From the NCBI GenBank assembly GCA_024137785.1, contig JAHRHZ010000042.1:23346682-23410681 (forward strand): a stretch of 64,000 nt of DNA. The letters are read 5' to 3'. The notes beneath the pieces were generated by a model. It ran no database searches and was not told the DNA's origin. It saw nothing but the letters and a program-made list of their open reading frames with translations. The position numbers were made by a program, and so were the translations under genes. The stretch comes from Ginglymostoma cirratum (Eukaryota). Numbering within the stretch: the stretch's first letter is position 1; every line of letters starts with the position of its first letter. Below are positions 18,250-63,940 of this stretch, in pieces.

Positions 18250-20235
18250 TCTTTAAAAGCTTGCTGTTATCAACTCATTTCCATTTTCTCTGCTGGTCTG
18301 CCAAACAGCTACTGGATTAAGGTTCATTTGTGTATTCCTACTCAGGCTTCATTGCCTTTCTAAGCTGAATAGTTTCAGGAAACTCTTTTGTGTTCAATAT
18401 GTGCTACTTCTCAAACAAATGCCGTTAAAACAGTAGGTGTGAGTTTCTTGATGCCTGATTCAGTTAATTGATTTCAAAGCCTTTGGACGGAACAGTAGTT
18501 TCAGTTGAAATTATTTAATTTATTCCATATTGGTTTCATGAGTCTGCCTCAAACCACAGTCAGAATGATTGTTAACAACATCCGTGTCTCTTCCTTGTTA
18601 AAACCATCACAGTCTCTGAAAATCTCAGGTATTAGAATCACTTGAAGTTGAAAACTGACAGTCCTTATTTTACAACTATTGAGACACCATTAAATAAACA
18701 ATATAAATTAATAGCTTTACCACTGTGTTTCCTCGTTGCTCCCTCCAATTGATTTCACTCACTTACACCAGTTCTCTTTGCTTGTTTTGGGATTTGAGTT
18801 GGATTCAGGTCTTTGTGAACGTGTTCATTTTATTTTTGTACTGATACTTTCTCCAGTTCTGAAATCTGATCACTATTTATTAGAAGATAGTGCCTGTCTG
18901 CTCCAAATTGGACTATTAATTATCATTTGGTAGCACAGAACCTGAAATTGTTGTAAAGTGACATGCTTGATCAAAGTCTTTCAACTTGCAGTCATCAGGA
19001 CATTGACGAAATACCAACGTAAAGGGGATATTTCTATACTGTTGGGAACAACACACTGACTGTCTGGCAAGTGGATTCTGAGTGGGAAAGGTGTTACTAT
19101 GGAACATATACCAGTTCGATAATGAATGACAGCTACTTACCAAGAATTCTTTAAAATTAAAACCAGGTAGATCGGCTCTGATTGCTCAAGGCGTTGTCCT
19201 GCAGAAGGAATCAGAGAATGACACTGCGTTTCATGCTGTGCAAGCATAGAGTGGTTGGGTACAGTCTGTAACTTTTCTGTTGCAAATAGCTGAGCTGGAA
19301 TGTTCTTTAATATGACATTCCAGACATAATGATGTACACACTAGCATCACACCAGCTCTACAATCCATGCACCACATCATGCATATGTGCAACAGGCAGA
19401 TGTCCTTTTTGGTTTGACAGCAACATCCTGTTCATGGCAATAACATAACTCCCTTTACATTGTTATACTTGTAAATGTCATGATGAGTGCAAGACAAAAA
19501 GCTTTGAAATGATTTTTTAAACAATGCTCAAACTATTAATGTTACCGATCCTCTGTGACTTGTTGAAAATTTTGATCGCGTTCTGTAAATGAAAGGACAA
19601 TACAAACAATATTTTTCAGCAGCTTTTCGACCGCTTTTACATGAAAAGTTGCAAATTAAATAACTCTTTAACCTCTTTTAACCGACTAACTGTTAAAAGG
19701 GCAGAAGATGTCTCCAAGGGGAAACTAAAGGAAAAAGAAACACAAAACATCTCAATTTCTCATTATACTACAGACTGGCATTCATGTAAAGAAAAATACA
19801 ATTATATAATGCTTTTCAAAATTGTAGGTTGTCCACACTTTATCCCTTGTTATTTTTGAAATGGAGGGAAAGATATAAGACAGAATATCATTTCAAGTTA
19901 CTTCAACTAAATAATCAGACAAAAAATCATATATAAAAATGAGAAAAATTTGCTATTCACGTTGATGAAGTTGAAGAAATGCACAGAACCACCACATTTG
20001 TCAATTCACAATATTGAGGGGATATACAACAAAACATTACATTAAATAGATGGGATATTGGATAATTCCTAATAAAGTCTATTATATGTACATGGCACTG
20101 AAACAAGGCAGTCGATCGCAGAAATGACGTTGTTGTTTCTTACTTGTCCATTTTATTTCCTTATGTTATGTCCCAATCATAAATTGAAACAATGTCTTGG
20201 TCAGTTGCACACTGAATGAGGCAACTGTTGCTGTC

Positions 20236-20291
20236 TTAAAATGGTAAACTGTCAAATAACACAGCAAGTGGAAGTAGCCAAAATATTGAAT
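20236..20291 (-). CDS. Gene B last coding exon, hydrophobic GPI-type signal: DSIFWLLPLAVLFDSLPF*
   Basis: Very strong acceptor ctttattctttttatttcAG, phase 1, TAA at 20238-20236; AATAAA at 20157-20152. Confidence 0.7.
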
Positions 20292-21390
20292 CTGAAATAA
20301 AAAGAATAAAGATTAAAAATGTTATTGTTATATGCAAATGAAATAAGTAATTATAAATAGAAATGACAACTAACACGATAAACCCTTACTAGCCTAAACT
20401 AGGGTGTCACGTTTTCTCTCATACAGGTTAATCAACAAGTAATGTGGCCTCTTGGTAAGGGAATGATGCATGTGGGATAGGATCATATTGAAAAGGTTAA
20501 AATTCAATAAAAACAGTGGATGAATGTGTTAATATATCGACTGTACAACATAAGCGGCTAGTTTGAGATAAGCTACTGCACTGCTGTTAGATTTAAGAAT
20601 AAGTTTCCAACCAAAGGTTTTGTACATTTTGCCGTGCAAAGGTGAGACACACACACACACACGCACACATAGATTCTATTTGGCTATAATGAGGTCAATG
20701 ATATTCCTTTGTACTGTACAGTAAAATTCTATCGTGATTCAATAAAGCAAATATGTATAGCTAGCGTACACTTGAAATTGAATCTACAACTTGATTAAGA
20801 TGAACACTTCAGATTTGAGTAATTCTTGTATTATTTTTGCGGAAATTAAGCACCAATTACTCCATTGGCATATCACGTGTTATAACTTCAGAGCCTTCAA
20901 TTGTAAATCAGCAACATGGAACACATCAGTTACTTACACGCATCAATGAAAAAAAAAACAGAAAAAAGGGACAAAGATAGAATACTGAGGCTGTTGGAAA
21001 TCTGAACTCTTCAGCAGACAGGCAGCAATAGCAGAGAAAGAAACAAAGCTATCATTTCCATTCAATGACTGTTTGGCAGAACGGTTTAGATGGAAGGTCA
21101 TTGACCTGAACTGCCAACTCTCTCGCTCCACATATACTGTCTGACCGGATACAGCCTTAGTGAGATCATGAGGGTAATATTTGGGAGTCATGAAAAACTT
21201 TTGATTTGTCCAAAATTTAGCACCTCAGTTTAAATAATCTAAACATTCCACCTATTCTTCCATCTCTTGAGGACTAGCCTTTGCTTAAATATTCGTATGC
21301 TAGTGTTGTGGCTTCAAACTGAATAGCTACCCAGTCACTCAATTGCACATATTTCTTGTTAAAAAAAGTCCATGCGGTTGACCTTCTCAC

Positions 21391-21435
21391 CTGCTTTGAA
21401 AAGACTTCCACTGGAGGAAGATCTCGTCCGGGCTG
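21391..21435 (-). CDS. Gene B stalk/omega-site exon: AARTRSSSSGSLFKA
   Basis: Acceptor ttctctttattacaatAG(cAG), donor CAG|GTGAGA, 45 (or 42) nt, symmetric phase 1-1, open. Confidence 0.72.
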
Positions 21436-23062
21436 CTATTGTAATAAAGAGAATTTTGAGACAGGATTAAATTTAGTAATTTTATTTGAATTGGTAAAAT
21501 AACAATTTAGACTTCATAAGGGAACCCTTAAAATAAAGCACAATATCGACATAGATGTATCAATTTAGAAAACCACATTAAGACCCTATTCTACACAGCC
21601 CATAATAAATTGTTCCAAAGTGTATTCCATTTAATTCATGGAAGAAACAATGTAGGTAGTAAACACACTCAGAAAAAAAATTTCCTTTACAGACTAGGGG
21701 AAATTAAGTAACCCTGGAGAGAGCTCTGAATGTAAATCCAATTTTACAATCCCCAGCTTGCGGTTGTGGATCTTTCAACCACAGGCAGATTCGCCTTGAG
21801 ATTTTACTCGTGGGCTCAGAACATAACATCCAAATAACCATTTTATCCGAAGCATGCACTAGCTTATAGCTTAAAACAGTACTCTGGCTTCTAGTGAGGC
21901 AAGGTTTGCTAATTTTAGCATATGTGCTGTGCAATATAATTTAAATTAAAGCAAGTGATTAATAGGAACCTCACGTTTGAAACTCTAATCTCTTGCTTGC
22001 TTTCATCAATGATGTTCAATAAAAGAGGGGTGAGCAGAAACACTGGCCCTGCATGCAGTTTTCCAAAATGTACATTGACTAATTCTCTTCCCTTCTCAAT
22101 AAACTGAAATGCAGTCACCAAACATTGTTTTTTCTCTCATTGTTGACTGACGGGCAGCATGTGTGTCGACAGACACTCATACATCAGTACTTACAGTCTT
22201 TTTGCACAGTGCACAAAGATCCACAGCAAATCTATAGAAATTCATGAGAAGGTTCTTGATCTTTACTCTGTGGATGAACCATGTTTGTGTCAGGAATGCA
22301 ATCTCAAGCACACATTGCATGTTGATGACCTTAGGATAGTATGCATCACGTAAGTTCCTTTGGATAGTCAGTGCCAGTGATTCCTCTCAGCCAGTCTCTG
22401 AGCGTTGATCTGCTTTGGCAGTCAAATTGCAGCAATAGAAACAAAGCATACTAAACTAGACAATGCTGTTTGCATTTGATTTAAGGATAAGGATTTGTTT
22501 GTTTTTTTAAAATTCAGACGTTGATTCTGAAACTAAAACTATACACACATTTTGCAAGAATTTAATCAAAAGGATGGAAAAACAGGTTTAGTTTTCATAA
22601 AGTGCTTCCAGAGTGCAAACCTTTTCAATTTGATAAAATAAAGCCAGTTAAATCACTTTGCTGGAATCTGAAGATGTCTTCGTAAAACTTTCGTGCCTGG
22701 GGCTTAACTTGTCATTACACATTCAACTGCAATTTGACCTTGTAGTTTTTAGGAATTCTTCCTTTCATTTGTTTGGTTTGAAAGTAAAACCAATGGTCAT
22801 CAGTTGCAACCAAAATACTGGAGAACTCAGCAGTGCAATTTTTTTTAAAAGCACAATCTCATTCAAGTAAATCAACACAAGATTTACAGGGTATGTCTTT
22901 CAGTTTAGCGTACTGCATTTTCTGTTCGCAACATGGTCTCCTGATTTTTGGGGAGATCAAACGCAGACTAGAGACTGTTTAGCAGAATATTTACATTCAA
23001 TGCCAATATCATATCAAAGTACAAGCCTATTCCTCAAAGAAAGCAACAGCATTTTTTGAGGG

Positions 23063-23295
23063 ATAGCAGGAACTGTTGACGCTGGAGAATCTGAGATAAC
23101 AAAGTGTAGAGCTGGGTGAACACAGCAGGCCAAGCAGCATCAGAGGAGCAGGAAAGCTGACATTTCGGGTCTGGACTCTTCTTCAGAAAATGGCAGAAAA
23201 ATTCTGAAGAAGGTCCAGACCCGGAAGATCAGCTTTCCTGTTCCTCTGATGCTGCTTGGCCTGCTGTGTTCATCCAGCTCCACACCTTGTTATGT
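23063..23295. mobile_element. Penelope-derived foldback (hairpin arms of about 100 bp) with a 16-bp TSD
   Basis: Arms are near-perfect reverse complements; TSD cagca(t/c)tttt(t/c)gaggg at 23047-23062 and 23296-23311. Confidence 0.9.
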
Positions 23296-24404
23296 CAGCA
23301 CTTTTCGAGGGCTTCCTTTTTAAGAAAATGCTTGTTTTGAAATTTCTGATTGAACCCAAATTACCCTTGGTATGTTTACTTGGGGCTAGCTATTAATTTT
23401 ATTATTCTTTTGATTCAGATTGAGGAAAGAAAGAAATTGCAAAAATCAGACAAATAGTAGTTGAACATGCATCAGCACTGCTTAATTTTTATTCAAACAA
23501 CCCTAAGCTGTAAGTAGCTAAGAAACGACTTGTCAATGCATATTAAGTTTGCAAACAAATAGTTGAACTGTTCTTCTATTGTCAATTTAAAAAGAATTGA
23601 ACTCCGATCATGGAAGCCAAAACTGTTTCCTTAGTTGTTACTTAATTCCTTCAACTCCCTTCTAGATATCATCAATCAACCAGTTCAGATGCCATTATGA
23701 CATTTCTGTGGAACAAATGGGATGTGAAACCAAGCCTTCTGGATCAGGGGTAAGACACTGCCTATGCACCGCAAGAGCCTGCCAACTCCCTTTCACACTG
23801 TTTTGATAAAACTCAATTGAGCTTGAGGAGCAGCACTTCATCTGTCAATGAGGTATGTCTGGGTAATTTCAGAAAGAACCTAGCCATTAATCCACTTTTT
23901 AAGGCAACAGTTTTTAGCGATGATTCTGTCATTTCTACTTACACACTGTCTAGACCGATCTTTTGTTTCTATAATTGTGCTCATGAGCATACCTTTGTGT
24001 TACAATGACATCCCTCTCATCATTTAATTTCTTCTGCCTTCCACCTTATTATAGACCTTTATTTTTGTCCTTTCCTTTCCTTTTACTGTATATCTCCACT
24101 AAACCTGTGACACACCCCCGGCACTTTCTTCCGTTCTGATGAAAAATCATCATCCTAAAAGTCTTTGTTTCTCTCCTCAGAGCTGCTATCTGAACCACTG
24201 AGCACTTACAATTTTCCTGCTTTCATGTTAGAAAATTACTTGCAATTATTGAAGTTGCTGAGATAAACAAATCTTGTCACAAAAAAAGAGTTTAACCGCT
24301 GAAAGCTGAAAGAAAGGTAAAGTCATGAAACCTTGCTCATTTAACAGTGATGAGATGCAAACACCACCTCAACTTATTTGTAACTTGGGATTGTGAGGTA
24401 AGAA

Positions 24405-24950
24405 TAAACCATATTCGGAGTGCTGTGTGCCATTTCTGGTTGCCCTAATATAGGAAGGATGTTTTTGAACTGGAAATGGTGCAGAAAAAATTTACAAGGA
24501 TTTTACCAGGACTGGAAGGTTTGAGTTATAATGAGATGCTAAATAGGCTAGGACTTTTTTCCATGGAGGGTAGGAGGCTGAGGCTTGATCTTGTAGAGGA
24601 TTATAAAATCATGAGAGGCACAGATAAGGTGAATAGCCAAGGTCTTTTTCCCCAGGAGAGGGGAGTCCAAAACTAGACAGCAAATTTTAAGGTGAGGTGG
24701 AAGGACTTGAGGGGCAAATTTTTCACAAAAAGGGTGGTGCGTATATGGAATAAGCTACCAGAGAAAGTGGTAGAGGCAGGTACAACTAAAAGATTTAAGA
24801 GAGTTTTGGACAGGTACATGGATAGGAAAGGTTTAGAGGGATATGGGCTAAACACAGGCAAATGGGACCAGTTCAGTTTATGAAACCTGGTCAACATGGA
24901 CAAGTTGGGCCAAAGGGCCTGTTTCCGTGCTGTATGACTCTATGACAAAG
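24405..24950 (+). mobile_element. CR1 LINE 3' fragment
   Basis: VQKKFTRILPGLEGLSYNEMLNRLGLFS...; tail tgctgtatgactctatgac. Confidence 0.9.
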
Positions 24951-25232
24951 TAAGAACTGACCACTCCAGTGCTTAAGCAACTTGTTTTTGATACAAAGCA
25001 CATCATGGGAAATGTGGTAAAAAAAAGAACAATTAGTTACACATTTCTTCATGAACAGATGCTTACTAAAGAAATTGCTGACAATTTCATATGAAACAAA
25101 GCTCTTTAGTCACATCAATTTTTTTTGAGGATGAGAGAACTTCCATTTTCTGTGAAACAAACTGAGCTGATACATCAGAGAAGGAGATCATCTATCAGAC
25201 AGTCTAAAGAAAACACAAAGTGTCTTCTGAAA

Positions 25233-25377
25233 TAACAAAGTGTGGAGCTGGAGGAACGCAACAGGCCAAGCAGCATCAGGGGAGAAGGAACATTGACGTT
25301 TCGGGTCAGGACCCTTCTTCCTCCAGCTCCTCACTTTGTTATCTCTGACTCCAGCATCTGCAGTTCTTGCTACCTTT
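25233..25377. mobile_element. Short Penelope-derived foldback with a 15-bp TSD
   Basis: TSD aagtgt(c/t)ttctgaaa at 25218-25232 and 25378-25392. Confidence 0.8.
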
Positions 25378-26504
25378 AAGTGTTTTCTGAAAATTTTTTT
25401 ATGGGATGAGAACACTGCGGTGAGGCCAACATTTATTGCCCGTCCCCGCCAGGCTTAGAGAAGGTGGTGGTGAGCTGTCTTCTTGAATCATTGCAGATGT
25501 TGGAGTGTAGAGTTGCTCACAATACTGTTAGAAAGGGAATTTCAGGATTTTGACCTGGTGACAGCGAGGGACTGGTGGTATCGTTCCAAATCAGGATGGT
25601 GAGTGGCTTGGAGGGGAACTTGCAGAAGTATAACAAAAAGTGCTTGAATCATAGAAGGTTCAGCACAAACAACTCTGATACTAGTTATATTTATCCTCAT
25701 TTTACGTTTCGGTTGTTAGCCTTCATTCAAACTTTTGTATGTTTTCCAGGGTTTACCTGATTCCCCCTTAAATGTAACATTTAATTACACCTTAGTATGT
25801 ACTTATAATAATACATTCCATTTCCTAATAACCTCTCTGTGTCATACACTATCATGTCATCATTTTTTTCATGTTAAAATGCTGGTGGTGAATGTATTAT
25901 CCACGAACTCTAGAAATTGCTCCTTCACTAATGACTGTCTAATCTTGCCTTGCTCAAAACTTAGTTAAAATCTTTACTGTGATGTAACTTACTGTAAAAG
26001 ACTGTTTAAGAACCGTTCGATACAGGTTACATTGTAGTTACTTTGCAGTAGTCAAATTCTTAGCAAATTTAAACCAAAGTTACATTCAAAAGCTTTTCGA
26101 AGTACAGTTATTAATACCTTTGCATTCAAAACAATTGGCTTAATTTATACAGCCCCCTCAAAGGACTGCAAACAAGCATATAAACTTCCAGTTATGATTG
26201 ATTCAGCCAGGGATATGTTCAAACATTTGTCAGGAGAGTGCTGACTTCTACTGCAATGTTTTTAAAACGAGCGCAGAAGATCACATAAACTTAATAATCG
26301 AAAAACATTCCCTAGTATTTGCATTTGGTCTGCTGAATTTCAGGTGAATTGTGCAGAATAAATGAACACAGCTAAGTAAAAATTCTGGACACCAGTTGTA
26401 AGAATGAAATCAGAAAGTAAAGGCTCAGTATGAAGCTGACAATGACCAAAGGACCTGCCTTTGCACAAATCATATACAATTGGATGAATGAACTGTTGCA
26501 AAAA

Positions 26505-26710
26505 TGGATAGCAGAGGAAGACGTGGAGGCTGGTACAACTACAAGATTTAAAACGCATCTGGATGGGTTTATGAATAGGAAGGGTTTAGAGGGATATGGG
26601 TCAAATGCTGGCAAATGGGATTAGATTAATTTAGGAATCTGATCAGCATGGACGAGTTGGACTGAAGGGTCTCTTTCCGTGCTGTGCAGCTCTATGACTC
26701 CATGACTCTA
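26505..26710 (+). mobile_element. CR1 LINE 3' end
   Basis: gtggaggctggtacaactacaagatttaaaacgcatctggatggg...ctctatgactccatgactcta. Confidence 0.85.
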
Positions 26711-27919
26711 ATTGAGAATTATCTTCACCAGAAATATGCAGATCTGGATGTTGAAATTTTCAAGACTATAATGTTTGGGACATTGTGCAATAGAGGCAAA
26801 TGTACTGACATTTCAATCAGTTATTTGAGATTCTGATCCACTCACTGTCAAGCACAGCATACAATTCCTCAAATGCTTTGTGATGAGGAATTACCATCAC
26901 TGTGTGATTATAAATCACTACATGAAATGACATACAGGATACAACAGTACAGGATATAACCCTTCCTTTCATATAGAACATAGATGAAATCAGAGCATCC
27001 TGTGCCAAATTTAAAGCACAGACCATTGTTCTAAAAGGTTGACCAAATTTACAGTAATATTAGCCATTATAGTGCCACCAACTCCCCAAGAAATGTACAA
27101 TAAGGAGAAAAAATGTACAACACATCTTAATTCTTTCAATCATATCGTGTGACACAGGTGCAGCAACACAAGAAATCAAATGAACAGTGCACAATAGGAT
27201 ATAATTGCAGGCTGCAACCTATTTGAAAATGATTCAGGAGCTGTCAATTTTATTGTCTCTCAAATCAAGTTTTTAAAGTCTACAGTTGCTGGAACAATGA
27301 TCCCTAAGATATCTAATTTCCATATTGTCTCTCATAATTCTCAGTCACTTCTGATAAGTAGAAGAAAAGCAGAGCTGCTATAATTTGGAGAATAGCATCA
27401 AATATACAATCATAGCGTATTAATGGTACATGGAAAGATTTAGAAAATTGAAATGATTTGCACTGCAGCAAGGAAGTTTGAGAGCAAAAATGATTCAAGA
27501 TTAAATAATGAATAAATAAAAGTAAACAAGAGAGTAGTGTATAATAATGTTATTCAACTTTGACTGTCAGCAGAGAAGTAAATTGCACCGTAACAGGTTC
27601 TCAGATGCTGCAGGCGTTTCCAACTTCAATTTCTCGGGGTCACCTGTTGAACATTTACTTGGAAAATGGGATGGTGAGTCATAACTATAAATATCAGTGG
27701 TCAAATGTTGTATAGGGCACAATGGGTGGTTTTTAAAAGCTGATGGTGCAGACATTAAATATCATGTTTTGTAAACAACAAGTGCATACTGTGGGATCTA
27801 AATCAGCTTTTCTCACTCTTTCCAGGACATAGGTATCAGTCTAAAGGCCAGCATTTATTATCCTTCACTGCTTGCTGTCAAGACAAAACTGAATAGTTGA
27901 ATCACATTTAGGCCAGACA

Positions 27920-28440
27920 CAAAGTCTGAATTGGGGATGTTTGCACGATGTTCAGCACCACTCGTGACCCCTCAGATATGACACGGCCCAAGTCAGGAAT
28001 GTAATGGAATACTCCCTGCTTGTCTGGACGGATGCAGCTCCAACAACACTCAAGAAGGACCATCAAGGACAAAGCAGCATGCTTGATTGGCATCACACTC
28101 ACAAACATCCACTCCTATCACCACTCACACTCAATAGCAGCAACAAGAACTATCCACAAGATGCACTGCAGAAATTCAGCAAAGATCCTTAGGCAGCATC
28201 TTCCAAGCCCATGACCACTTCCATCTAGAAGGACAACGGCAGCAGATATATGAGAACAGGATGACGTACAAGTTCCCCTCCAAACTCACCACCCTCACTT
28301 GGAAATGTATCGCCGTTCCTTCACTGTCATTGGGTCAAAATCCTGGAATTCCCTCCCTAAGGGTCATTGTGGGTCAATCTACAGCACGTGGACTGCAGCG
28401 GTTCAAGAAAGCAGCTACCACCACCTTCTCAAGGGCAAAT
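27920..28440 (+). mobile_element. Second CR1-clade LINE family, 3' fragment
   Basis: MEYSLLVWTDAAPTTLKK / TIKDKAACLIG / TIHKMHCRNS. Confidence 0.8.
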
Positions 28441-28569
28441 TACAGCTTTTTCCCCTTTGAGATTCTCCTGTAATCTCAATGAATGAATGATGGTGAAACT
28501 AAACCCCACAAAAATTAAAGTGATCGTTTTTTAAATAAAGTAGGAAATATTTCGGTTTGATCTAGGTCT

Positions 28570-29050
28570 GTACAGAATTAGTTATAAACGCAGTCATTCA
28601 ACCTATCAAACCTGTCTGACCATTCAATTAAATCACAGCTGATCTTCTACCTCAAAGCAATTTTCCCACTCCATCTCCATATTCCTTAAAATCTTTAGAC
28701 TACAGAATCCTATTGATACTGCCTTCAATATACCTGATGATTAAGCTTCCAAAATTCCTCAGATTAGAGAATTCCAAAGTCTTACCATGAACTGAACCAA
28801 AAAAAAAAATTCCTCCTCATCTCCACCTTAAGTGGCCTATGGCTTATTCTGAGGGTCTGTTCCATGGTGCTACAGTTACCAGCCAAGGGAAAAATCTCTT
28901 CAATATCCAACCCATCATGCCATGTAAGAACGTTACAAGTTCAAATGAGGTCTTCTCTCTTTCTTTAAAACTCTTGAGGACATAGACCCATTTTCCATAG
29001 TTTCTCCTCATAGCTAATCCTGAATCACATGGATTAATCCTGGTTGATAT
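28570..29050 (-). mobile_element. Decayed CR1 3' fragment
   Basis: agaattccaaag...aaattcctcctcatctc is the reverse-strand CR1 pattern. Confidence 0.65.
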
Positions 29051-29247
29051 GCAACATTTAGTGACAGTATTTGATGTTATAAATGAAAAGGTGGATGTGG
29101 TCCACTGAGAATGATGCTATTTGAAATTTGTCAAATCTTAAGCCATTTAATTGAATCTTAGCTTGAATCAAGCCCCCATATGAGCCAATGTCTCCTGAAA
29201 TATAAACCTTCAAACTATAATGCAAATATATTTTTAATGAAACCTAC

Positions 29248-29544
29248 CAGGCTGAACAAAAAGATCAATGTTGTTTTCAAATGACTTGTCTTTAGTGAAT
29301 GCGCAGCATGTGTATCTTCCGCTGTGTGAAAAATTTAATGTTGGAATTGTTAAAATCATTTCTCTATTTTCTATACGATGAGTCAAGCCCTTGCATTCCA
29401 CGCTATTAGCCTTTATATAGCAAATAAATTCATCATTAAGTTTCCAGTATACAATAACATCCTTTTCTTCACTGCTGAATGGGTAGACACACTTCAGTAC
29501 TCCTGGACTGCCAAATGTAGCATTCTGTTGTACAGGGTGACTGC
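29248..29544 (-). CDS. Gene B Ig V-type domain exon (CD160-like / B7-like)
   Basis: Acceptor gctcttttttttcaaacAG, donor CTG|GTAGGT, 297 nt, phase 1-1 (typical IgSF domain exon). B-strand Cys (VLKC), C-strand Trp (VIVYW), E-strand MILTI, F-strand HSGRYTCC, G-strand IDLFVQ. Confidence 0.92.
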
Positions 29545-31101
29545 CTGTTTGAAAAAAAAGAGCATAATCAATGTGCAATCTCATTTCATTCAGATTTTCT
29601 TATTAAGACACGTCAATAATCAGCACATCAGAATTTTGTTTGAAAGTATCCCTTGTAGGCCATATCCATTAGGGAATGTATCAGATACCCTTTTTTTTAA
29701 ATGATGTAGAGGTGCCGGTGATGGACTGGGGTGGACGCTCGTACTTATGAATGTGATCCCATAGAGTGGTCTAATTTTAAGTATCGAACATATGAATATA
29801 TCCTGTACTTACCAACAACTGCTTTATATTGTTCTACATTGTATTTTGACTTACATACAAATCAACCTGAGAATGGGCTCAGGGATGGAACTAGCTTGCA
29901 ACCCAGGGCTGCTTGTAAAGGGTTACCTATATCTTTAGTCTAAGAGTAACAACTGAGCAGATGTGTAAGATGCCATGCCACAGTGGCTGATCATATGGCA
30001 CTGGGACCCGACACTACAGGGTACCAGAGATCTCCTCTCTTACCATCCATATAATTACGCGCAATAAAGCCTGTTAATGATCACTCACCCAAATACAAAC
30101 CAGATCTTACTATACCAGAGATGTTGTTTAACTTGCCAAGTATTTCACCACTCTCCACTGTTACTGATTTATAATAGAAAGCTAATTCTACCTAAATGAA
30201 ATTGATCTACATGATTATTTTCATAACATTAACTTAACTGGTCAGCACTGATATAAGTGCTATGTTCTTTTAAAGTGAGGTCATAAATGTGACAGCTCAA
30301 TGCAAACCATGAAGCTTTATTCAGTCCAACTTCTCTGTTGTTGATCCATTGTACCTACAACAGGTTCAGAAATGATTTTACAAGCTAAATGTTACTCGGA
30401 GAGATCTTGCTATTTTACAATAGGAATCGCATTCTTTGGATATCTCAAGTTAAATCATTGATCCATTCAAAGGCAATTACTGTGGCTGATCAAGCAAAAT
30501 CAGCAGCTAATATGCAAACAAAATATCACAAATAGAAAATTATGCAAAAGGCTAAGTGATCCTATCTGGTTGTGCTAGTTGAGGGATGACTAGTTAAAGG
30601 CTAGTCTTTTTGACAAGGCAGCACCCTTTCAGGTCTGAATTGACATGTGACCCTAGATTGTGTACTCCAGTTCATGGGTGGTAACACTCCAGCTGGGAAA
30701 GGGCTGGCACAAAGGAATTCACAGCCACTGGCAATGCCATCCTTGCCCTGCTTTGCCGTAACTTACTGACACAAAGTGATAGTGTTACCACCTGTGCCAA
30801 TTTGACTCCAAACTGTGTTTGTAAAAAGTTGGATTTCTCCATTTGGTCCTCATGTCCATCAAACGTTAAGCTGAAATTGTTGCACAGGTAAAGATTTAGC
30901 AAGAATTCAGACCTTGAACATTTTTTTTAAAAACATGGTAATAAACATTAAGTATGCATGCTAGAAGGCAGGAAAATAGCTCCCATCTGGAAGCTCTTGT
31001 AACTCTGAAGTAAGTTCTGGTGTCAAAGGAATTTTTCTAGCATGACAAATTAAAGCACTACTTATGGACTCATCATGTTACGTCATCAACCCGATACGTA
31101 C

Positions 31102-31171
31102 TCTCAGTATTTCCTTGCAGCCCGATTGTTGAAAAAATCACAATGTGGATGGTAGTAGTAATGGTAAACAT
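31102..31171 (-). CDS. Gene B signal-peptide exon, coding part: MFTITTTIHIVIFSTIGLQGNTE(S)
   Basis: Kozak-like gcagccATG, 23 codons plus 1 nt, donor AGA|GTACGT, phase 1 matching the V exon. An upstream acceptor tcttgctttacAG (exon start 31194) implies at least one further 5' exon. Confidence 0.82.
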
Positions 31172-34100
31172 GGCTGCAGATTCAGTGGGAAAAGCTGTAA
31201 AGCAAGAGCACATTTCAATGGTAAACAAAAACATTAAAACATTCATATCCTATTTCATTGTAACAGTGATGAAGGAGCAGTACTCACTGTCCATCTCAAC
31301 AAAGTTATTTTCTGAGAGTAAGTTGGCTCCAATCTGGTGTTTCATTGAACACTGTGACTGTTAATAGGGGATCTGTGCAGCCTGGGAGTTGGAATTGCAA
31401 GGCTCTTCAGTTAATCAGGTTGAAGAGTGCTCACCATGACAGGTAGGACTAGATTGTAGTCCCTTCTTGAGCTGGGATTAGAGACAGGCCAGAGCCACAA
31501 ACAGTTACAACTGGCTTGCCGTGTCTGGCTCTATCCCACCGCTGACTATTTTTGCAGCACATAGGCAACCAGGCTCATTGTCCATGCTCCAATTTTCCAC
31601 AAATAGAAAATAGTGCAAAAGACGAAGTGATCTACTGTGGCATCACTGGTTGAAGGATGGGGCGTTGAAGCCAGAATGTCTGACAAGGGAGCACTCTTTC
31701 AGATCAACATTGATGCATCACCCTAGAGTGTGTACTCAAATAACAGGGGGTGACATAAAGATGTTTACAGCAATTAACAATGCTGTCTTCAACTTGCTTT
31801 GCTGTAACTTTCTAACACAAAGTGAGATTGTGTTCCCATCCATGTCAATTTGACCCCAATACTGTGTTCATTAAAAAGCTGATTGTTTTCTATTGGTTCC
31901 TCATTTAACATTCGGCTGGAATTGTGGCAAAAATAAAGATTTGGCAGACAATTCAGAGCTGGAAAAGGAAAAGAATGTGCAAAAATTGTACAGGAATTGT
32001 TTTGGTGCCTGAAAGCTGGCATTTGATGACAGGCAAAGGGGCTTATACTTCTGACAGGTGTTTCTTTCTTACCTTCTTTGGTGTAAGGAGCTACAGACCA
32101 CGAGGTAAAAAGGCTTCCCCATCACCTCCCTGACAGCTGAATCAGATTTTAACATTGAATATTTAAAAAATTGAAGAGGAAGTGCCTCCAAATTGAACCA
32201 CCCTCTCTCTAAGCTACCTATCAAGGTACCTGCTGCTCATTTTAAGCTGGAGGGCTTCTGACAGGCCCTCCATGTTGACAGGCCCTCCATGTTCAAGAGC
32301 CTTTCTGTGTAAGTGGACAGTAAACCTGCACTCTGACCATTCACTGACAATCCCAGGAGTTAAGTCCAGAATGCAAGATCAGTACCAACATTTATTTTCT
32401 ATCTTTGATGGAAATCCCTCCGCAATTTCAAAACCTATCAGTATAAAGCAGGAAGTGGGAATATCAGATTGAAATCAGGTACAGAAAGTGAAATAAAAAT
32501 TTAAATGGTCAGACAGAGTTTACAGAGAGAAAGAGAAAATGTAAAATGAAGTTAGATGGTCGTAGTTAAATTTCAACACTAATTAACTTCTGAAGAAATC
32601 AAACACTAGACTTGAAAATTAAATTTTCAGTGGATATTTTCCAGTGCCTATCATTTATCAGGCCAATAAATTTCATTTACTCCTTTATGTACCATTTCTA
32701 ACTTTCTCTGGCTTTGGAAAATACCCAAATTCATATCTTTGCAAGTCTTTCAATGGAAAGTCAATTGGAGTCATTTTATAACAGAACAGCCTATGCAACA
32801 TCAGAGTGATTCAACTTTCAGCATTTAAGGATTTATGCATGTACTCAAGCTGTAGACTAATTCAGTCAAGAATTCCACTGAGCGATGACAATTTCATCAT
32901 TATTATCAATACAGACGCATGACCAGCTTCTTACTTTTTGTCAAAAGGAATTCTCTCTATAAAACGTTTCGTAATTTGAGCAACCTCTGTTCACCTTTGC
33001 AACAGGTATGTGAATTGAATGACGTTTTCACTGGTCCGAACAACAAAAAGATCTAAAAAATAGGAGGAAATAATATCAAATTGTTGTAGAATTATATTAA
33101 ATACCTAAAGCATTTCAAGGATGTCCTAAATATAACACTGTTCCAATTAAAAGGGACACAATCTGGCTATTAGCATGAGTGGTACGAATGTGCAAAATGT
33201 TCCTCATCTCCACACTAACTCAGAATTATTGAGAGCTGGAAAAACAAAAGCTGAGGTACCCATTTTATTATACATTTGAAGGCAGTATAATACGCAGCAT
33301 GTTTGTTGCAACTCTGTCCAGAATTTGAGAAGTGCATTACTTCTTTTGATCATGAACTGCAAATTACACGCAGCCAATTCTGAATGAAAGGCAAGCCACA
33401 AGGAAGTGCCCATTAAGCTAATGATCTAGAAGCATAAAACTATAAATCTTTTCAGGAGTTATATTTTTACACACATATTTCCTATAATGCTGCTATCCTC
33501 ACACAACTATTCTTTGAGAACCTTGTTGTGATTGTGATAAAGATGAACAATCAATTTTTGTTTTCTTGTTTTAATAATTGAGACCTTGCGTGGACTAAAA
33601 TTGTTTAAAACAAAATCACTGCCTTAAGCCAGGTAAGTTTCACACACTGGGGATAAGACACCTGTACATTATCCAGCTGGGGAGTAAAAAAGGGATGGAG
33701 TCTGATGTAGAAATATAGATATGAATTAAGATTTGAGGGGACTACTTTGGACAGATTAGAGGGAGAGAAAAAATGGATTTGTAGCAGTAGACCTGGAAGA
33801 TTTGCTCTCTCCCTGCTTTTTCTCTCAGCTCTGAAGAGACAACAGTCAGTGAAAGCAAATTGGAGAAACATCCATTCACTGAGCATTCAAAGATACCTAC
33901 AAATTCTGCTTCTACAGAAAATAATAGTCCATGAACTACGCAACCATGATCTCAGAGTAAAATGTAACACTTCAAGGATACTAAGGATTTTAAAATTGTA
34001 TGTTCTTTTATCTTTCTGATTGAACCGGGAAGTGACCCCCTTTAAACGTCATACCTGTGTTTGTCTGTGCATTCAATATCATATATTATTACATTTCTTA

Positions 34101-38129: not shown

Positions 38130-40200
38130 CTGATATACAGGGAAGTTCTGTCACTTGATGGATTCAAGATTGATATGGTGGAAGCAATGGATAGACTGTC
38201 AGTACTTAAAATTGACAAGGTGCCAGAACTGGATAAGATGCATCAAAGATGTAGATGTTCAAAGGAATTTGTGAATGTACAAAGGGCCCGAGGTGTCCTT
38301 CACCAGTCAACAAAAGTAGATAGGCAGATGAAGCAACAATCGGGGAAGTAAATGGTATATATGCAAGAGGATTTGAGTACAGAAGTAGAGATATCTTACT
38401 GCAGTTATACAGGATTTGTTGAGATCACAACTGGAGTAGTGCATGCAGTTCTGGCCGTTCTACCCTAAAAAAGGATATACTTGCCATTGAAGGTGTGCAG
38501 CAGAGGTTCACTAGACTAATACCAGGGATGGACGTAAGGAGAGATTGACTGGGCCTAATTCACCAGAATTTAGAAGGATGACGGGAGACCTGATTGGAAT
38601 ATATAAGATTCTAACAGGGCTACACCCAGAATACACCTCCTCCCACCCACCTTCCTGCAAAAATGCCATCCCCTATTCCCAATTCCTTCGCCTCCGCCGC
38701 ATCTGCTCCCAGGATGAGGCATTCCACTCCCGTACATCTCAGAGGTCCTCATTCTTCAAGGACCGCAACTTCCCCCCCGCAGTGGTCGAGAACGCCCTCG
38801 ACCGTGTCTCCCGCATTTCCCGCAACTCATCCCTCACACCCCGTCCCCGCAATAACCAACCAAAAAAGAATCCCCCTCGTCCTCACATACCACCCCACCA
38901 ACCTCCGGATCCAATGCATTATCCTCCGACACTTCCGCCATCTTTCCCTCCCCACCCTTGTCTGCTTTCCGGAGGGACCACTCTCTCCGTGACTCCCTTG
39001 TCCGCTCCACACTCCCCTCCAGCCCCACCATACCCGGCACTTTTCCCTGCAACTGCAGGAAGTTTTACACCTGCCCCCACACCTCCCCCCTCACCCCCAT
39101 CCCAGGCCCCAAGACGACTTTCCACATCAAGCAGATGTTTGCCTGCACATCTGCCAATGTGGTATACTGTATCCGCTGTACCCGTTGTGGCCTCCTCTAC
39201 ATTGGAGAAACCAAGCGGAGGCTTGGGGACCGCTTTGCAGAACACCTGCGCTCAGTTCACAATAAACAATTGCACCTCCCAGTCGCGAACCATTTCAACT
39301 CCCCCTCCCATTCCTCAGACGACATGTCCATCCTGGGCCTCCTGCAATGCCACAATGATTCCACTCGAAGGCTGCAGGAACAGCAAATCATATTCAGCCT
39401 GGGAACCCTGCAGCCCAATGGTATCAATGTGGATTTCACAAGCTTCAAAATCTCCCCTCCCCCAACCACATCCCCAAACCAGCCCAGCTCGTCCCTGCCT
39501 CCCTAACCTGTTCTTCCTCTCACCTATCTCCTCCTCCCACCTCAAGCCGCACCCCCATCTCCTATCTACTAACCTCATCCCGCCCCCTTGACCTGTCCGT
39601 CCTCCCTGGACAGACCTATCTCCTCTCTACCTCCCCACCTACACTCATCTTTACTGGCTCCATCCCCGCCTCTTGGACTTGTCTGTCTCCTCTCCACCTA
39701 TCTTCTCCTCTATCCATCTTCTATCTGCCTCCCCCCTCTCCCTATTTATTTCAGAACCCTCTTCCCCTCCCCCATTTCTGATGAAGGGTCTAAGCCCGAA
39801 ACGTCAAGCTTTCCTGCTCCTATGATGCTGCTTGGCCTGCTGTGTTCATCCAGCTCCACACCTTGTTATCCTGGATGCAGGGAGGTTGTTTTCCTTGGTT
39901 GGTGAATCTAGAGCCAGGAGATACTGTTTGAGGATCCAGGGTGGACCATTTATGACTGAGCTCAGGAAAAATTTCTTCACTCAAAGGATAGTGAACATGT
40001 GGAGAAGACTATCACATAAGGCTGTGGAGATCAAGTCACTGAATTTGCTCAAGGAAGAGATGGATAATTGCTTAGATTTTAAAGGCATCAAGGGGCACGG
40101 GGTAAAAGTAGGAATATGAAATTAAGATTAAGGATCAACCATGAACAGACTGAATGGTGGAGCAGGCTCGAGGAGCCAAATGGTCTCCTCTGAGTTTTTA
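38130..40200 (+). mobile_element. CR1 LINE fragment interrupted by a Penelope element
   Basis: CR1 ...EFRRMTGDLIGIYKILTGL stops at about 38620 and resumes as DAGRLFSLVGESRAR at about 39871. Confidence 0.85.
38621..39870 (+). mobile_element. 5'-truncated Penelope-like element (Neptune-type): RT C-terminus, Cys-rich linker, GIY-YIG endonuclease and 3' pLTR
   Basis: HPPSCKNAIPYSQFLRLRRICS (RT thumb); GTFPCNCRKFYTCPH; NVVYCIRCTRCGLLYIGETKRRLGDRFAEH (GIY-YIG). Frameshifted near 38865-38950. Confidence 0.95.
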
Positions 40201-48129: not shown

Positions 48130-49730
48130 CAAAGGGTTGTCAAAAGATACAGAAGGATATAGATCAGTTGGAAAGTTGGGCTGAGAAATGGCAAATGAAG
48201 TTTAATCCAGATAATTGTGAGGTGATGCATTTTAGAAGGTCAAACGCAAGAGGAAAGTATACAGTAATTGGTAGGACCCTTTGCAGCATCAAAAGACAAA
48301 GGGATCTTGAAGTCTGCAGCTCCCCGAGAGTGGCAATGTAAATGGATAGGTGGTAACAAAGACGTACGGCATGTATGCCTTCATTGGTTGGGGCATTGCG
48401 TATAAAAGTTGGCTAGTCATGTTGCGGCTGTATAAAACCTTAGTTCGGCCACATTTAGAGTATTGTGTGCAATCCTGGTTGCCACATGACAGGAAGGGTA
48501 TGGAGGTTTTGGAGACGGTGCAATAGAGGTTAACCAGAATATTGCATGGATTGGAATGTATTAGTTATAAGAAGAGGTTGGACAAACTTGAATTGTTTTT
48601 GCTAAAGCATCAGAGACTGAGGAGGAACCTGATAAAAGTATATAAAATTATGAGAGGCATGCATAGGGTGGGTGAAAGTCTTTTTGAAATTGTCGATATG
48701 CTCGCTGAGCCGATGTGTTTGGTTGCAAACATTCCATCACTCTGCTGGGTAACATTGTCAGTGCGCCTCCAGTAAAGTGTCGGTGTTCTGTCCCACTTGT
48801 TATTTATGTGCCTCGGTTTGCCGGGGTGTTTGTTATTACTTCCAGTTCTATTTCTCTGTTTGGCTTGTGCGATTATGGATCTGTTGTCGAACATAAAGGA
48901 TCCTATACCCAAAACCAGCAAAACTGGTGTAATATACAAAATACCATGCAAGGTATTTGTGAGAAATACTACACAGGCCAAACTGGAAGAAAACTGACAA
49001 ATCGGATACAGGAACACCAACAGACACGACCATTTCTCACTGGTCTCAATATACACGGACAACGAGGGACACGAATTCGACTGGGACAACACATCGATAA
49101 TCACACAAGCCAAACAGAGACATGCCAGGTAGTTCCTGGAGGCCTGGCATTCCAACTGGAACTCCATCAACAAACACATTGAATTAGACTCTGTGTACAA
49201 ACCACTGAGAAACAGAATAGGAAGTAATACCAACCACCCCAGCAAACAGAGGCATTTAATAACAAGCGGGACAGAACACCGATGCGCAGTGACCATGTTA
49301 CCTAGCAGGGTGACAAACGTTTGCAACCAAACCCACCGGCTCGGTGAGCATATCTCCAACCTCATCCACAACCCAAGTTACAAATCTTGTTGAAAACTTT
49401 AGAAAGTCTTTTTCCCCAGGGGAGAAATGTCAAATGTCGGGGTGTATAGCTTTAAGGTGAGGGGAGCAAGTTTAAAGAGAAGTGCAAGGCAGTTTTTTTT
49501 ATACAGAGGGTGCTACGTGCCTGAAACACACTGCTGGGGAAAGTAGTAGAGGCAGATACAACTGAAAAGTTTAAGAGGCATTTAGACAGACACACAAAAA
49601 GGCTGGGAATAGAGGGATACAGACCATGTACATGCAGATGTAATTAGTTTAGAATGGCGTCAATGTTGACACAGACATGATCGGCTGAAAGGTGTTTTCT
49701 TGTGCTATATTGTTCTACGTTCTACGAAGA
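48130..49730 (+). mobile_element. CR1 LINE 3' part interrupted by a Penelope element
   Basis: GLECISYKKRLDKLELF...NLIKVYKIMRG; resumes at 49402. Confidence 0.85.
48686..49401 (+). mobile_element. Penelope-like element (Poseidon-type GIY-YIG) with an inverted 5' copy of its 3' end and a 12-bp TSD
   Basis: KDPIPKTSKTGVIYKIPC / YYTGQTGRKLTNRIQEH / GHEFDWDN / FLEAWHS; 48690-48875 is inverted relative to 49095-49355; TSD gaaagtcttttt at 48674-48685 and 49402-49413. Confidence 0.9.
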
Positions 49731-61539: not shown

Positions 61540-63940
61540 GAATCTAATCGTTTCAGATCATGAAGAATCAAAGCAAAACAGCAACGTTTCAATGTTTCAA
61601 TTGGTCATGAGGGTTAAATAAATGACATTTGTCTTATCGTAATGCAAAAAGTGACAATACCCAAAAAGAAGTATCAAATAGAAACTTTACCCTGATGGAT
61701 GATGTTTTAAAAGATCATTACTGGTTAGAAAATTATAAGAACATAACCTGCTTGTACAATATATTGATAAATGAATCACAGATCACGTCTGTTGAATCTA
61801 AATTTTCTGAAGCAATGTCAAAATTAGTCAACAGGGAAGTTTCTATAGATTTTATTAAATGGACTTACAAAAGAATGAAAGACTCTTATACGAGACCATT
61901 TCTGAGACTCATGGAGTTAAAGCAAATTATTGACCCAAAGACAAAACTGGTTGAGTGGCAGAAAACAGAGAGAGTATAAGTAATGGGCAGGTATCTCTAC
62001 GAAGCAGCATTTTGCCAGCGGCATTTCATAAGGATATACTTTAGATCCTCAATTATTCAGTAAATTCATGAATGATTTATGATAGGATCCAAAGACAAAT
62101 ATTCAGATTTGCCAATGATAGGCAACATCAGATGGAAGCCTAAAAGTAAAAGTTACAGACAGATTAAGTGAAAAGACCAAACTATGACATATGGATTTCA
62201 ATGTAGGCAACTGTGAAATCACACACCTTGGAATCTAAAACGGATAGATTAGGATATTCTTTAAATGGCGAAAAGCTAAGCACAGTGGAAGTCCAAAGAG
62301 ACTGGGAGGGTTCTGGGTAATGAGGATTACTGAAAAGTGAAGAACTGTCACAGAAAAAGAAATCAAAAAGTCTAATGGAACACTGGCCTTTAGATCTACA
62401 GCAACAGAATACAAAGGAACAGGAGAAATGGTTCAGCTCTGGAAAGCGCTGTTCAGAACAGGCCATGAGTACAATGAACAGTTCTGGACCAGACCATAAG
62501 AAGGATATATTGGGCGTGGCACAGCGCAGCTTAACTTTCCCAAAATGATACCTGTACTCAAAGGGTTAACCTATAAAAGAGATTTTTAAAAAATATTGAG
62601 TTCTTTAAAATGTCAATGAATTAAGCAGAACAGAATGAATGGATTGGGAGAAACTACTCCTGTTAATTCAAGAGGTTAAGAATACTTAGCACAGTCAAAA
62701 ATTGAGACTTAGGCCTCTTAGCAGTCACACAAAGGCTGGTAGAGGAAATTGGCAGTACAGTGGACAGTGAAGAAGCTTATCTAAGATTACACAGCGTCTC
62801 AATCAATGGAGTCAATAGGCTGAGGAGTGGCAGATGGGAGTTTAATTTGGACAAATGCGAGATACTGCATTTTGGTGAAACAAACAAGGGCAGGACTTTG
62901 GGGTGACATGGTGGCTCAGTGGTTAGCACTGCTGCCTCAAAGCACCAGGGATCCAGATTGGATTCCAGCCTCAGGTGACAGTCTGTGTGGAGTTTGCACA
63001 TTCTCCCCGTGTCTACGTGGGTTTCCTCTGGGTGCTCTGGTTTCCTCCCACAGTCCAAATGTGTGCAGGTAAGGTGGATTGGCCACAGGAAATGCAAGTT
63101 ACAGGGATAGGGTAGAGTCATTGGTCTGAGTGGGCCACTCTTCAGTCAGTGTGGACTCAATGGGTTGAATGGCCTGCTTCTGCACTGTAGCATTCTATGA
63201 CTTATACAGTTAGTGGTATAGCCTTGGGTAATATTGTAGAACAGACAGACCTAGGGGTTCAGGTACTTGATTCTTTGAAATTTGCATCACAGTGGGTGGT
63301 TAAGAAGGCATTTAGCACACTTGCCTTCATCGCTCAGACCTTTGAGCATAGGAGTTGGGAAGACATATTGAGGTTGTCCAGGTCATTGCTAAGGCCTCTC
63401 CTGGCATACTGTGTCCAGTTCTGGTAGTCCTGTTACAGTAAGGATATTATTAAACTGGAGAGGCTTCAGCAAAGATTTACCAGGATGTTGCTGGGAATGG
63501 AGGGTTTGCAGTTATAAAAAGAGGCTGGATCGGCTGGGACTTTTTTCACTGGTGGTTGAGGGGTGACCTTATAAAGGTTTATAAAATCATGAGGGGCACA
63601 GATAAGGTGAAGAGCAAGGGTCTCTTACCTCGGGTGGGGGAGTTCAAAACGAGAGGGCATATTTGTAAGGTGAGAGGTGAAAGATTTAAAAAGCACATGA
63701 GGGACAACTTTCTTAAACAGAGAATGATTCGTGTGTGGAATGAACCGCCAGGAGGAAATGACAGGTGCAGGTACAGTTACAATGTTTAAAAGTAATTTGG
63801 ATAATTACATTAAAAGGAAAGGTTTGGAGGGATATGGGCCAAATGCAGGCGGGTGGGAATAGCTTAGTTTGGGAACATGGTCGGTGTGGACTCGTTGGAC
63901 TGGAGAATTTTTTCCATGTTGTACAACTCAATGATTCTAT
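61540..63940 (+). mobile_element. Two CR1 LINE fragments (older at 61540-62740, younger at 62740-63940)
   Basis: Degenerate RT region, then LSRSLLRPLLAYCVQFW and RGDLIKVYKIMRGTDKV, then the 3' tail. Confidence 0.85.
62900..63200 (+). mobile_element. HE1-like SINE nested in CR1
   Basis: ggtggctcagtggttagcactgctgcctca head; CR1 sequence resumes at about 63200. Confidence 0.85.

Follow-up and report, generated by a model that had tools for sequence, protein, structure and literature searches.

A transcribed single-IgV gene of the nurse shark belongs to an elasmobranch-wide protein family with a probable GPI anchor

The stretch of DNA analysed here (64,000 nt, hereafter the window) comes from the nurse shark Ginglymostoma cirratum (assembly GCA_024137785.1, contig JAHRHZ010000042.1, positions 23,346,682 to 23,410,681), and all coordinates below are counted from its first letter. 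On its minus strand lies a gene whose four coding exons encode a small protein with a signal peptide, a single immunoglobulin variable-type (IgV) domain, a short stalk and a hydrophobic C-terminal tail. This gene is a newly recognised expressed member of an elasmobranch-wide, fast-evolving and uncharacterised family. Its features, in the order of transcription, are the following, where GPI stands for glycosylphosphatidylinositol and UTR for untranslated region:

31196-31195, minus strand: acceptor AG before coding exon 1
31102..31194, minus strand: coding exon 1, with 23 nt of 5' UTR and, from the ATG at 31171 on, 70 coding nt; it encodes the signal peptide MFTITTTIHIVIFSTIGLQGNTE and ends with the first base of a Ser codon
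29248..29544, minus strand: IgV exon 2, with 98 complete codons, both ends in phase 1, and two sequons (NAT and NFS)
21391..21435, minus strand: stalk exon 3, encoding ARTRSSSSGSLFKA, whose small-residue run is the candidate GPI attachment (omega) region
20236..20291, minus strand: last coding exon 4, encoding the hydrophobic C-terminal peptide (D)SIFWLLPLAVLFDSLPF, with the stop codon TAA at 20238-20236
20152..20157, minus strand: AATAAA, a candidate polyadenylation signal ~80 nt past the stop codon, read from the sequence only

By direct reading of the sequence, the donors after exons 1, 2 and 3 are GTACGT, GTAGGT and GTGAGA. The acceptors (...caaacAG, ...acaatAG and ...tttcAG) each stand behind a pyrimidine tract: exon 2 is preceded by ttttttttcaaacAG, exon 3 by ttattacaatAG and exon 4 by ttttatttcAG. 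The codons split across the exons are AGC (S), GCA (A) and GAT (D), and the phases therefore agree. An earlier reading of the same letters (the sequence-only reading) had placed four minus-strand exons at 31171-31102, 29544-29248, 21435-21391 and 20291-20236; the coordinates, the GT/AG sites, the phase 1 and the translation of each exon all match those found here.

Four RNA data sets were placed on positions 25800-31799: raw reads of a poly-A RNA-seq run (X14), another RNA run (X15), and the contig sets X1 and X2. Five X14 reads with four starts carry the join 31102^29544 (joint 29543->31101, a skip of 1557 nt bounded by GT..AG on the minus strand), and the same joint is present in one X1 contig and one X2 contig. 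The first junction proposed for checking by the sequence-only reading is thus confirmed in reads and in both contig sets. The X1 contig (712 nt) consists, in order, of 29 letters, positions 29248-29543, positions 31101-31194 and 293 more letters. It breaks exactly at 29248, and its 29 further letters do not lie in 25800-29247; the donor of the V exon is therefore used, with a partner outside 25800-29247. At its other end, this contig runs 293 nt past 31194, i.e. just after the AG at 31196-31195, which implies at least one further upstream exon. The gene thus has at least one non-coding 5' exon, located upstream of 31799 and missing from the four-exon model, and coding exon 1 starts at 31194. 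The second RNA run (X15) gave essentially no reads on 25800-31799. The X2 set also includes unspliced sequence across the V-exon donor; read-through of this donor would add only GRFH and then a stop (open reading frame, ORF, 29234-29584).

The X14 reads differ from the reference at two positions of the IgV exon. A G>A change at 29326 (7 of 8 reads) replaces His with Tyr (H73Y), and an A>G change at 29345 (8 of 9 reads) is synonymous (Ile66). Both contig sets carry the reference letters at 29326 and 29345, and H73Y is therefore a coding polymorphism within the species. In all the RNA sets, contig depth reaches the thousands at 26400-26800 and 28000-28430, both inside intron 2, and at 29600-29800, with many variant letters and internal joints. 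This signal is the usual one of abundant interspersed repeats that are transcribed, not that of the IgV gene.

All searches for homologues used single exons or natural homologue proteins as queries, and the spliced 155-aa product was not joined. With the V exon as query, the best match is the bamboo shark protein GCC23276.1 (chiPu_0001670, Chiloscyllium punctatum, 156 aa, hereafter P0001), with 77% identity and an E-value of 2.7e-46. HMMER over 1.84 billion representative sequences adds proteins from the smooth-hound Mustelus asterias (LOC144479844) and the skate Rhinoraja longicauda (LOC144608712), the V exon alone reaching E 4.4e-18 to P0003 (Mustelus asterias LOC144479844) and 1.2e-10 to P0005. 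A profile search further adds a basking shark protein (Cetorhinus maximus LOC144669245) and a skate-like protein of the Logan assemblies. These homologues have nearly the same length (157 aa in Cetorhinus, 159 aa for Mustelus isoform X1, 156 aa in Rhinoraja and 159 aa for the Logan skate-like protein). Identity to the nurse shark V exon falls from 77% in Chiloscyllium to 54% in Cetorhinus, 47-48% in Mustelus and 33-37% in Rhinoraja. All the annotated homologues carry the names 'uncharacterized' or 'hypothetical', and our search of the literature on CD160 and Thy-1 in sharks and on GPI-anchored V-domain proteins of the nurse shark found no description of the family. The product of the nurse shark locus itself is absent from the results of the protein searches, whose best match belongs to another species (the 77% identical Chiloscyllium protein), so the gene appears to be unannotated in the nurse shark genome. 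The sequence-only reading had called this gene hidden: this holds for the nurse shark locus, but annotated homologues exist elsewhere.

When the exons were aligned as separate rows, each of them fell on the matching segment of the 156-159-aa homologues. In a tblastn search of P0001 against the window, exon 3 matches residues 126-138 of P0001 (77% identity) and the tail is matched with E 5.5e-4, the matches of exons 3 and 4 being in the correct order and on the correct strand. This exon-by-exon colinearity with four other elasmobranchs independently supports the four-exon model. The joins 29248^21435 and 21391^20291 are accordingly predicted from colinear homology with four annotated proteins. 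With five family proteins as tblastn queries against the window, only the four known exons scored, and there was neither a paralogous V exon nor an alternative downstream exon; a weak match at 28231-28389 sits in a highly repeated element.

The nurse shark protein shares with the LOC144479844-like family a colinear signal peptide, V domain, stalk and tail, together with the invariant Cys18, YW, ICY and CxG. In the six sequences, 20 positions are invariant (V-exon numbering), including Cys18, Tyr32-Trp33, Ile40-Cys41-Tyr42, Cys50 and Gly52 as well as Ser74-Gly75, Tyr77, Thr83 and Glu89. Mean pairwise identity is 53% in the signal peptide, 43% in the V domain, 34% in the stalk and 56% in the tail, and the ectodomain is therefore the fast-evolving part of the protein. 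In Mustelus, a second isoform (isoform X2, 138 aa) has a short hydrophilic end in place of the stalk and the hydrophobic tail, which suggests a secreted form. A six-sequence profile search up to E<=10 returned only family members and no named weak relatives (CD160, Thy-1 or B7). The strongest HMMER matches outside the family are generic multi-Ig proteins (unc-89-like, hemicentin-like, Dscam, perlecan-like and JAML-like) and were set aside as uninformative on ancestry.

The C-terminal tail has the layout of a classical GPI signal, i.e. small residues upstream of a terminal hydrophobic stretch with nothing after it. Every full-length member ends in 17-31 residues free of K, R, D, E and H, the mean hydropathy of the last 17 residues is 1.8-2.35, and small residues (S/G/N/A/C/T) stand 5-10 residues upstream of the hydrophobic part in all of them. 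In the nurse shark, the hydrophobic core IFWLLPLAVLF has a mean Kyte-Doolittle value of 2.62, and the exon 4 peptide has no basic or cytoplasmic residues past its hydrophobic stretch. The sequence-only reading had described a protein that starts with a signal peptide, has one IgV domain followed by a stalk of small residues, and ends in a hydrophobic tail without a cytoplasmic part; this description is borne out by a layout kept in sharks and skates. The same peptide might instead be retained, either as a transmembrane anchor without a cytoplasmic tail or as a retention or association segment. The tail is indeed the best-conserved segment of the protein, ahead of the V domain (56% against 43% mean identity), a motif LL(P/S/L)LAV..(W/Y)NF is common to sharks and skates, and the 19-20 hydrophobic residues present in most members are enough to span a bilayer. 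However, no member has any residue after the hydrophobic stretch, the small residues are suitably spaced upstream in all members, and the uninterrupted core has only ~11 residues in the nurse shark, so that we consider a retained segment unlikely. The GPI-type architecture is well supported, and GPI anchoring, as judged from these sequence features, is probable.

The V domain is a member of the immunoglobulin superfamily (IgSF), and Pfam detects it with generic profiles under their curated cut-offs (Ig_3, E 2.5e-5; V-set, E 8e-5; also Ig_2). The AlphaFold2 (AF2) model of the V exon is confident, with nine strands and a predicted local distance difference test (pLDDT) score of 91.3. Its landmarks are Cys18 in the B strand, Trp33 in C, Cys41 in C', Cys50 in C'' and Cys79-Cys80 in the F strand, of which Cys18, Trp33, Cys41 and Cys50 are invariant in the family. 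The model pairs strands 38-44 and 47-50 in the C'-C'' hairpin, whose register brings residues 41 and 50 face to face, and a second, family-specific disulfide between Cys41 and Cys50 is therefore likely. The other cysteines vary between species. The F-strand Cys is present in the nurse, bamboo and basking sharks and absent in the smooth-hound and the skates, where a G-strand Cys replaces it; the basking shark has both. The position of the F-strand doublet reads CC in the nurse shark only, CS in the bamboo and basking sharks, SS in the smooth-hound and G/A-Y in the skates. His73 is common to the nurse and bamboo sharks only, its place being taken by Asp in the basking shark and the skates and by Ala in the smooth-hound. 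Moreover, a stalk Cys of the skate members adjoins the predicted site of GPI attachment. Judged from the aligned sequences, the pattern of disulfides thus appears to have shifted within one small family.

From these results, the locus very probably holds an intact transcribed gene of at least five exons, belonging to an elasmobranch-wide family of IgSF surface proteins of ~155-159 aa with a probable GPI anchor. Several observations weigh against this interpretation. The joins between exons 2 and 3 and between exons 3 and 4 are, in the nurse shark, predicted from homology. The short hydrophobic core of the nurse shark tail (~11 residues) is followed by DSLPF, and a tail better conserved than the ectodomain is not what one usually finds in a peptide that is merely cut off; it could mean a retained membrane anchor. 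In addition, the canonical F-strand Cys is missing in the smooth-hound and the skates, which makes the disulfide pattern non-uniform. The precursor comprises a cleavable signal peptide, a compact IgV domain, a 15-residue Ser/Gly-rich stalk and a C-terminal hydrophobic peptide. Its IgV domain has the canonical B-F disulfide in the nurse shark and the predicted cross-strand disulfide Cys41-Cys50, invariant in the family. Most likely, the tail would be removed in the endoplasmic reticulum, and the ectodomain would be passed on to a GPI anchor close to the SSSSGS run. The product would then be a raft-resident recognition molecule without a signalling tail, which may act as a ligand or co-receptor via lateral partners, like Thy-1, CD160-GPI and CD48. 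In at least one species, a secreted isoform is annotated as well.

The structural comparisons of the V domain lean slightly towards the B7 family. With VIA-align, CD80 comes first (Z 14.1, rmsd 1.7, 95 residues aligned), followed by B7-H6 (Z 13.4), BARF1, CD48 and CD86 (12.9), with B7-H3 at 12.7 and PD-L1 at 12.2. With Foldseek, ranks 1-12 are IgV chains of PD-L1 (E ~5e-7 to 1e-6, TM-score 0.72-0.82, 16-19% identity), followed by SCN4B/SCN3B, JAML, 2B4 and CAR, and the IgV domain of CD80 is a match of the family profile (E 0.001). The protein could thus be a V domain of B7 kinship in which the IgC domain and the transmembrane region were lost or never existed, and which gained a GPI-type tail. 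However, the scores are near ties (in VIA-align, Z is still 11.8 at rank 50 and at least 8 for 427 chains), CD48, titin, SCN4B, JAML, CAR and nectins score alike, and identity in the B7-family rows is only 12-19%. Furthermore, no family member has an IgC exon, the X1 contig leaves the V exon for sequence outside 25800-29247, and the Pfam matches are only the generic ones below the curated cut-offs. The B7 proteins (CD80, CD86, PD-L1, B7-H6 and B7-H3) give the best superpositions of the AF2 model, with scores that do not stand apart from those of many other IgV families. They have a V domain, a C domain and a transmembrane region, whereas the nurse shark protein combines a single domain with a GPI-type tail. 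A B7-derived origin is accordingly improbable, and a fair reading of the model would be a generic compact IgV domain leaning slightly to B7. The sequence-only reading had kept a GPI-linked B7-like V domain as its alternative; the structure searches fit it slightly better than CD160 but are not decisive.

The favoured proposal of that reading was that the gene is an orthologue or a specific relative of CD160, and this is not supported. CD160 is a GPI-anchored IgV receptor of natural killer (NK) and T cells for TNFRSF14 (HVEM) and class I molecules of the major histocompatibility complex (MHC), and the nurse shark gene could be its cartilaginous-fish orthologue or close relative, diverged beyond sequence detection. 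The resemblance concerns, on the one hand, the layout. Like human CD160, whose structure is available in the PDB (6NG3; PMC12714101), the nurse shark protein has a single IgV domain and no cytoplasmic tail, with a predicted GPI anchor, and its gene has a 5' non-coding exon. The soluble isoform of Mustelus also parallels soluble CD160 (PMC13682303). On the other hand, it concerns the cysteines: the nurse shark protein has five of them, including a CC doublet in an F strand of the form YxCCA, as human CD160 does, and the B-strand Cys is spaced by 15 from the C-strand core residue in either protein. The doublet that the sequence-only reading gave for human CD160 is correct (C112-C113; PMC12714101).

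These shared residues are not ancestral in the shark family. The CC doublet, and with it the YxCCA strand and the set of five Cys, is found in the nurse shark alone and in none of the five other family members. The His that replaces the canonical Asp, taken with the doublet as the link to CD160, is Asp or Ala in the other members except the bamboo shark, and it is polymorphic in the nurse shark (H73Y). Both features are therefore lineage-specific. In human CD160, the disulfides are C44-C112 and C61-C68, the latter in the CC' loop, and C113 is free (PMC12714101), whereas the additional bond predicted in the shark family joins C' and C'' (C41-C50). Residues 110-128 of human CD160 (YQCCARSQKSGIRLQGHFF) form the FG/G0/G contact with HVEM (PMC12714101). 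By eye, they share only YxCCA and a later Phe with the F-G segment of the nurse shark, in which the segment contacting HVEM is not conserved. The shark V domain (98 aa) also has no counterpart of the G0 and H strands of CD160.

The searches agree with this view. No CD160 chain was returned by phmmer against all PDB chains up to E 10 (57 sequences listed, among them contactins, pIgR, SCN4B, CD4 and PD-L1). CD160 is likewise not among the 60 best matches of the family profile (IgLON proteins, titin, pIgR, CD4 and CD80 are), nor in the Foldseek rows to rank 50, nor in the best 50 VIA-align rows from 48,161 representatives (rank 50 at Z 11.8). The rows of the structure searches are nearly tied, which argues against a preference for CD160 while leaving room for distant kinship. 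A 2026 survey lists CD160 as a mammal-restricted IgSF gene (PMC13262535), and no PDZK1-, RNF115- or GPR89-like ORF is present among the window ORFs of at least 80 aa, ten of which were scanned by Pfam. We thus regard CD160 orthology as most improbable. If it were true, the CD160-HVEM axis would have arisen at the base of jawed vertebrates instead of in mammals. The family would then represent, in cartilaginous fishes, a mammalian GPI-linked IgV immune receptor, CD160 in the first place, having diverged beyond sequence recognition but keeping TNFRSF14 and/or MHC class I as partners, which is hardly to be expected either.

Thy-1 (CD90) is the nearest language-model neighbour of the whole bamboo shark protein. 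With P0001 as query in the ESM Atlas, Thy-1 clusters occupy ranks 1-3 (0.96, 0.95 and 0.95), sharing 190, 183 and 185 of 256 features with it. Size (~156-161 aa) and layout agree as well, with a signal peptide, then a single V-like domain, then a GPI signal, and the stalk Cys of the skates, which adjoins the predicted attachment site, resembles the attachment-site Cys of Thy-1. The family could therefore comprise elasmobranch Thy-1 orthologues or Thy-1 paralogues. However, the V exon by itself brings up only generic Ig clusters in the ESM Atlas and no Thy-1. HMMER over the 1.84 billion representatives returned no Thy-1-sized protein besides the family members, and NCBI names the homologues 'uncharacterized'. 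Neither the Cys pattern nor the number of coding exons is matched: in Thy-1, an A-strand Cys is bonded to the C-terminal attachment-site Cys, alongside the B-F bond, and there are three coding exons, whereas in the family no Cys precedes the B strand, the C-strand Trp is invariant and the coding exons number four. Since the whole of P0001 but not the V exon retrieves Thy-1, the resemblance is largely architectural. As a lead, the signal supports a Thy-1-like architecture, shared architecture being distinct from shown homology, and descent from Thy-1 is very unlikely. The deeper affinity of the family within the IgSF may be B7-like, Thy-1-like or CD160-like.

With its fast-evolving ectodomain, its shifting Cys pattern and its segregating variant, the protein looks like an immune recognition molecule and is thus a reasonable candidate for elasmobranch ligand-receptor screening; on sequence grounds, a fast-evolving polymorphic ectodomain would suit an immune-type recognition role. 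These results add to the shark genome an expressed gene whose product was lacking from the protein searches. They also define a small family of probably GPI-anchored single-IgV proteins across sharks and skates, which have so far carried placeholder names only. Furthermore, they call for caution in deducing orthology from two or three motif residues, as the residues suggesting CD160 proved to be lineage-specific.

The rest of the window consists mostly of repeats, including fragments of long interspersed nuclear elements (LINE), and its ORFs of at least 80 aa are repeats or noise. In a Pfam scan of ten large flank ORFs, the only matches were a GIY-YIG domain and a weak one to MADF, and no marker gene of the CD160 or THY1 neighbourhood was seen in the window. 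The GIY-YIG domain (E 1.1e-4, just above the cut-off) is in the ORF 38958-39503 on the plus strand, within a GC-rich block at 38-40 kb, and is consistent with a Penelope-like retroelement. The ORF 48715-49179 (plus strand) looks similar to it by eye and has no Pfam match. The MADF (Myb/SANT-like) match, under the curated cut-off (E 9e-4), concerns a 116-aa ORF at 61629-61976 (plus strand), which may be transposon-derived. Runs of N at ~17.8-18.2 kb and 44.3-44.8 kb correspond to assembly gaps or masked sequence.

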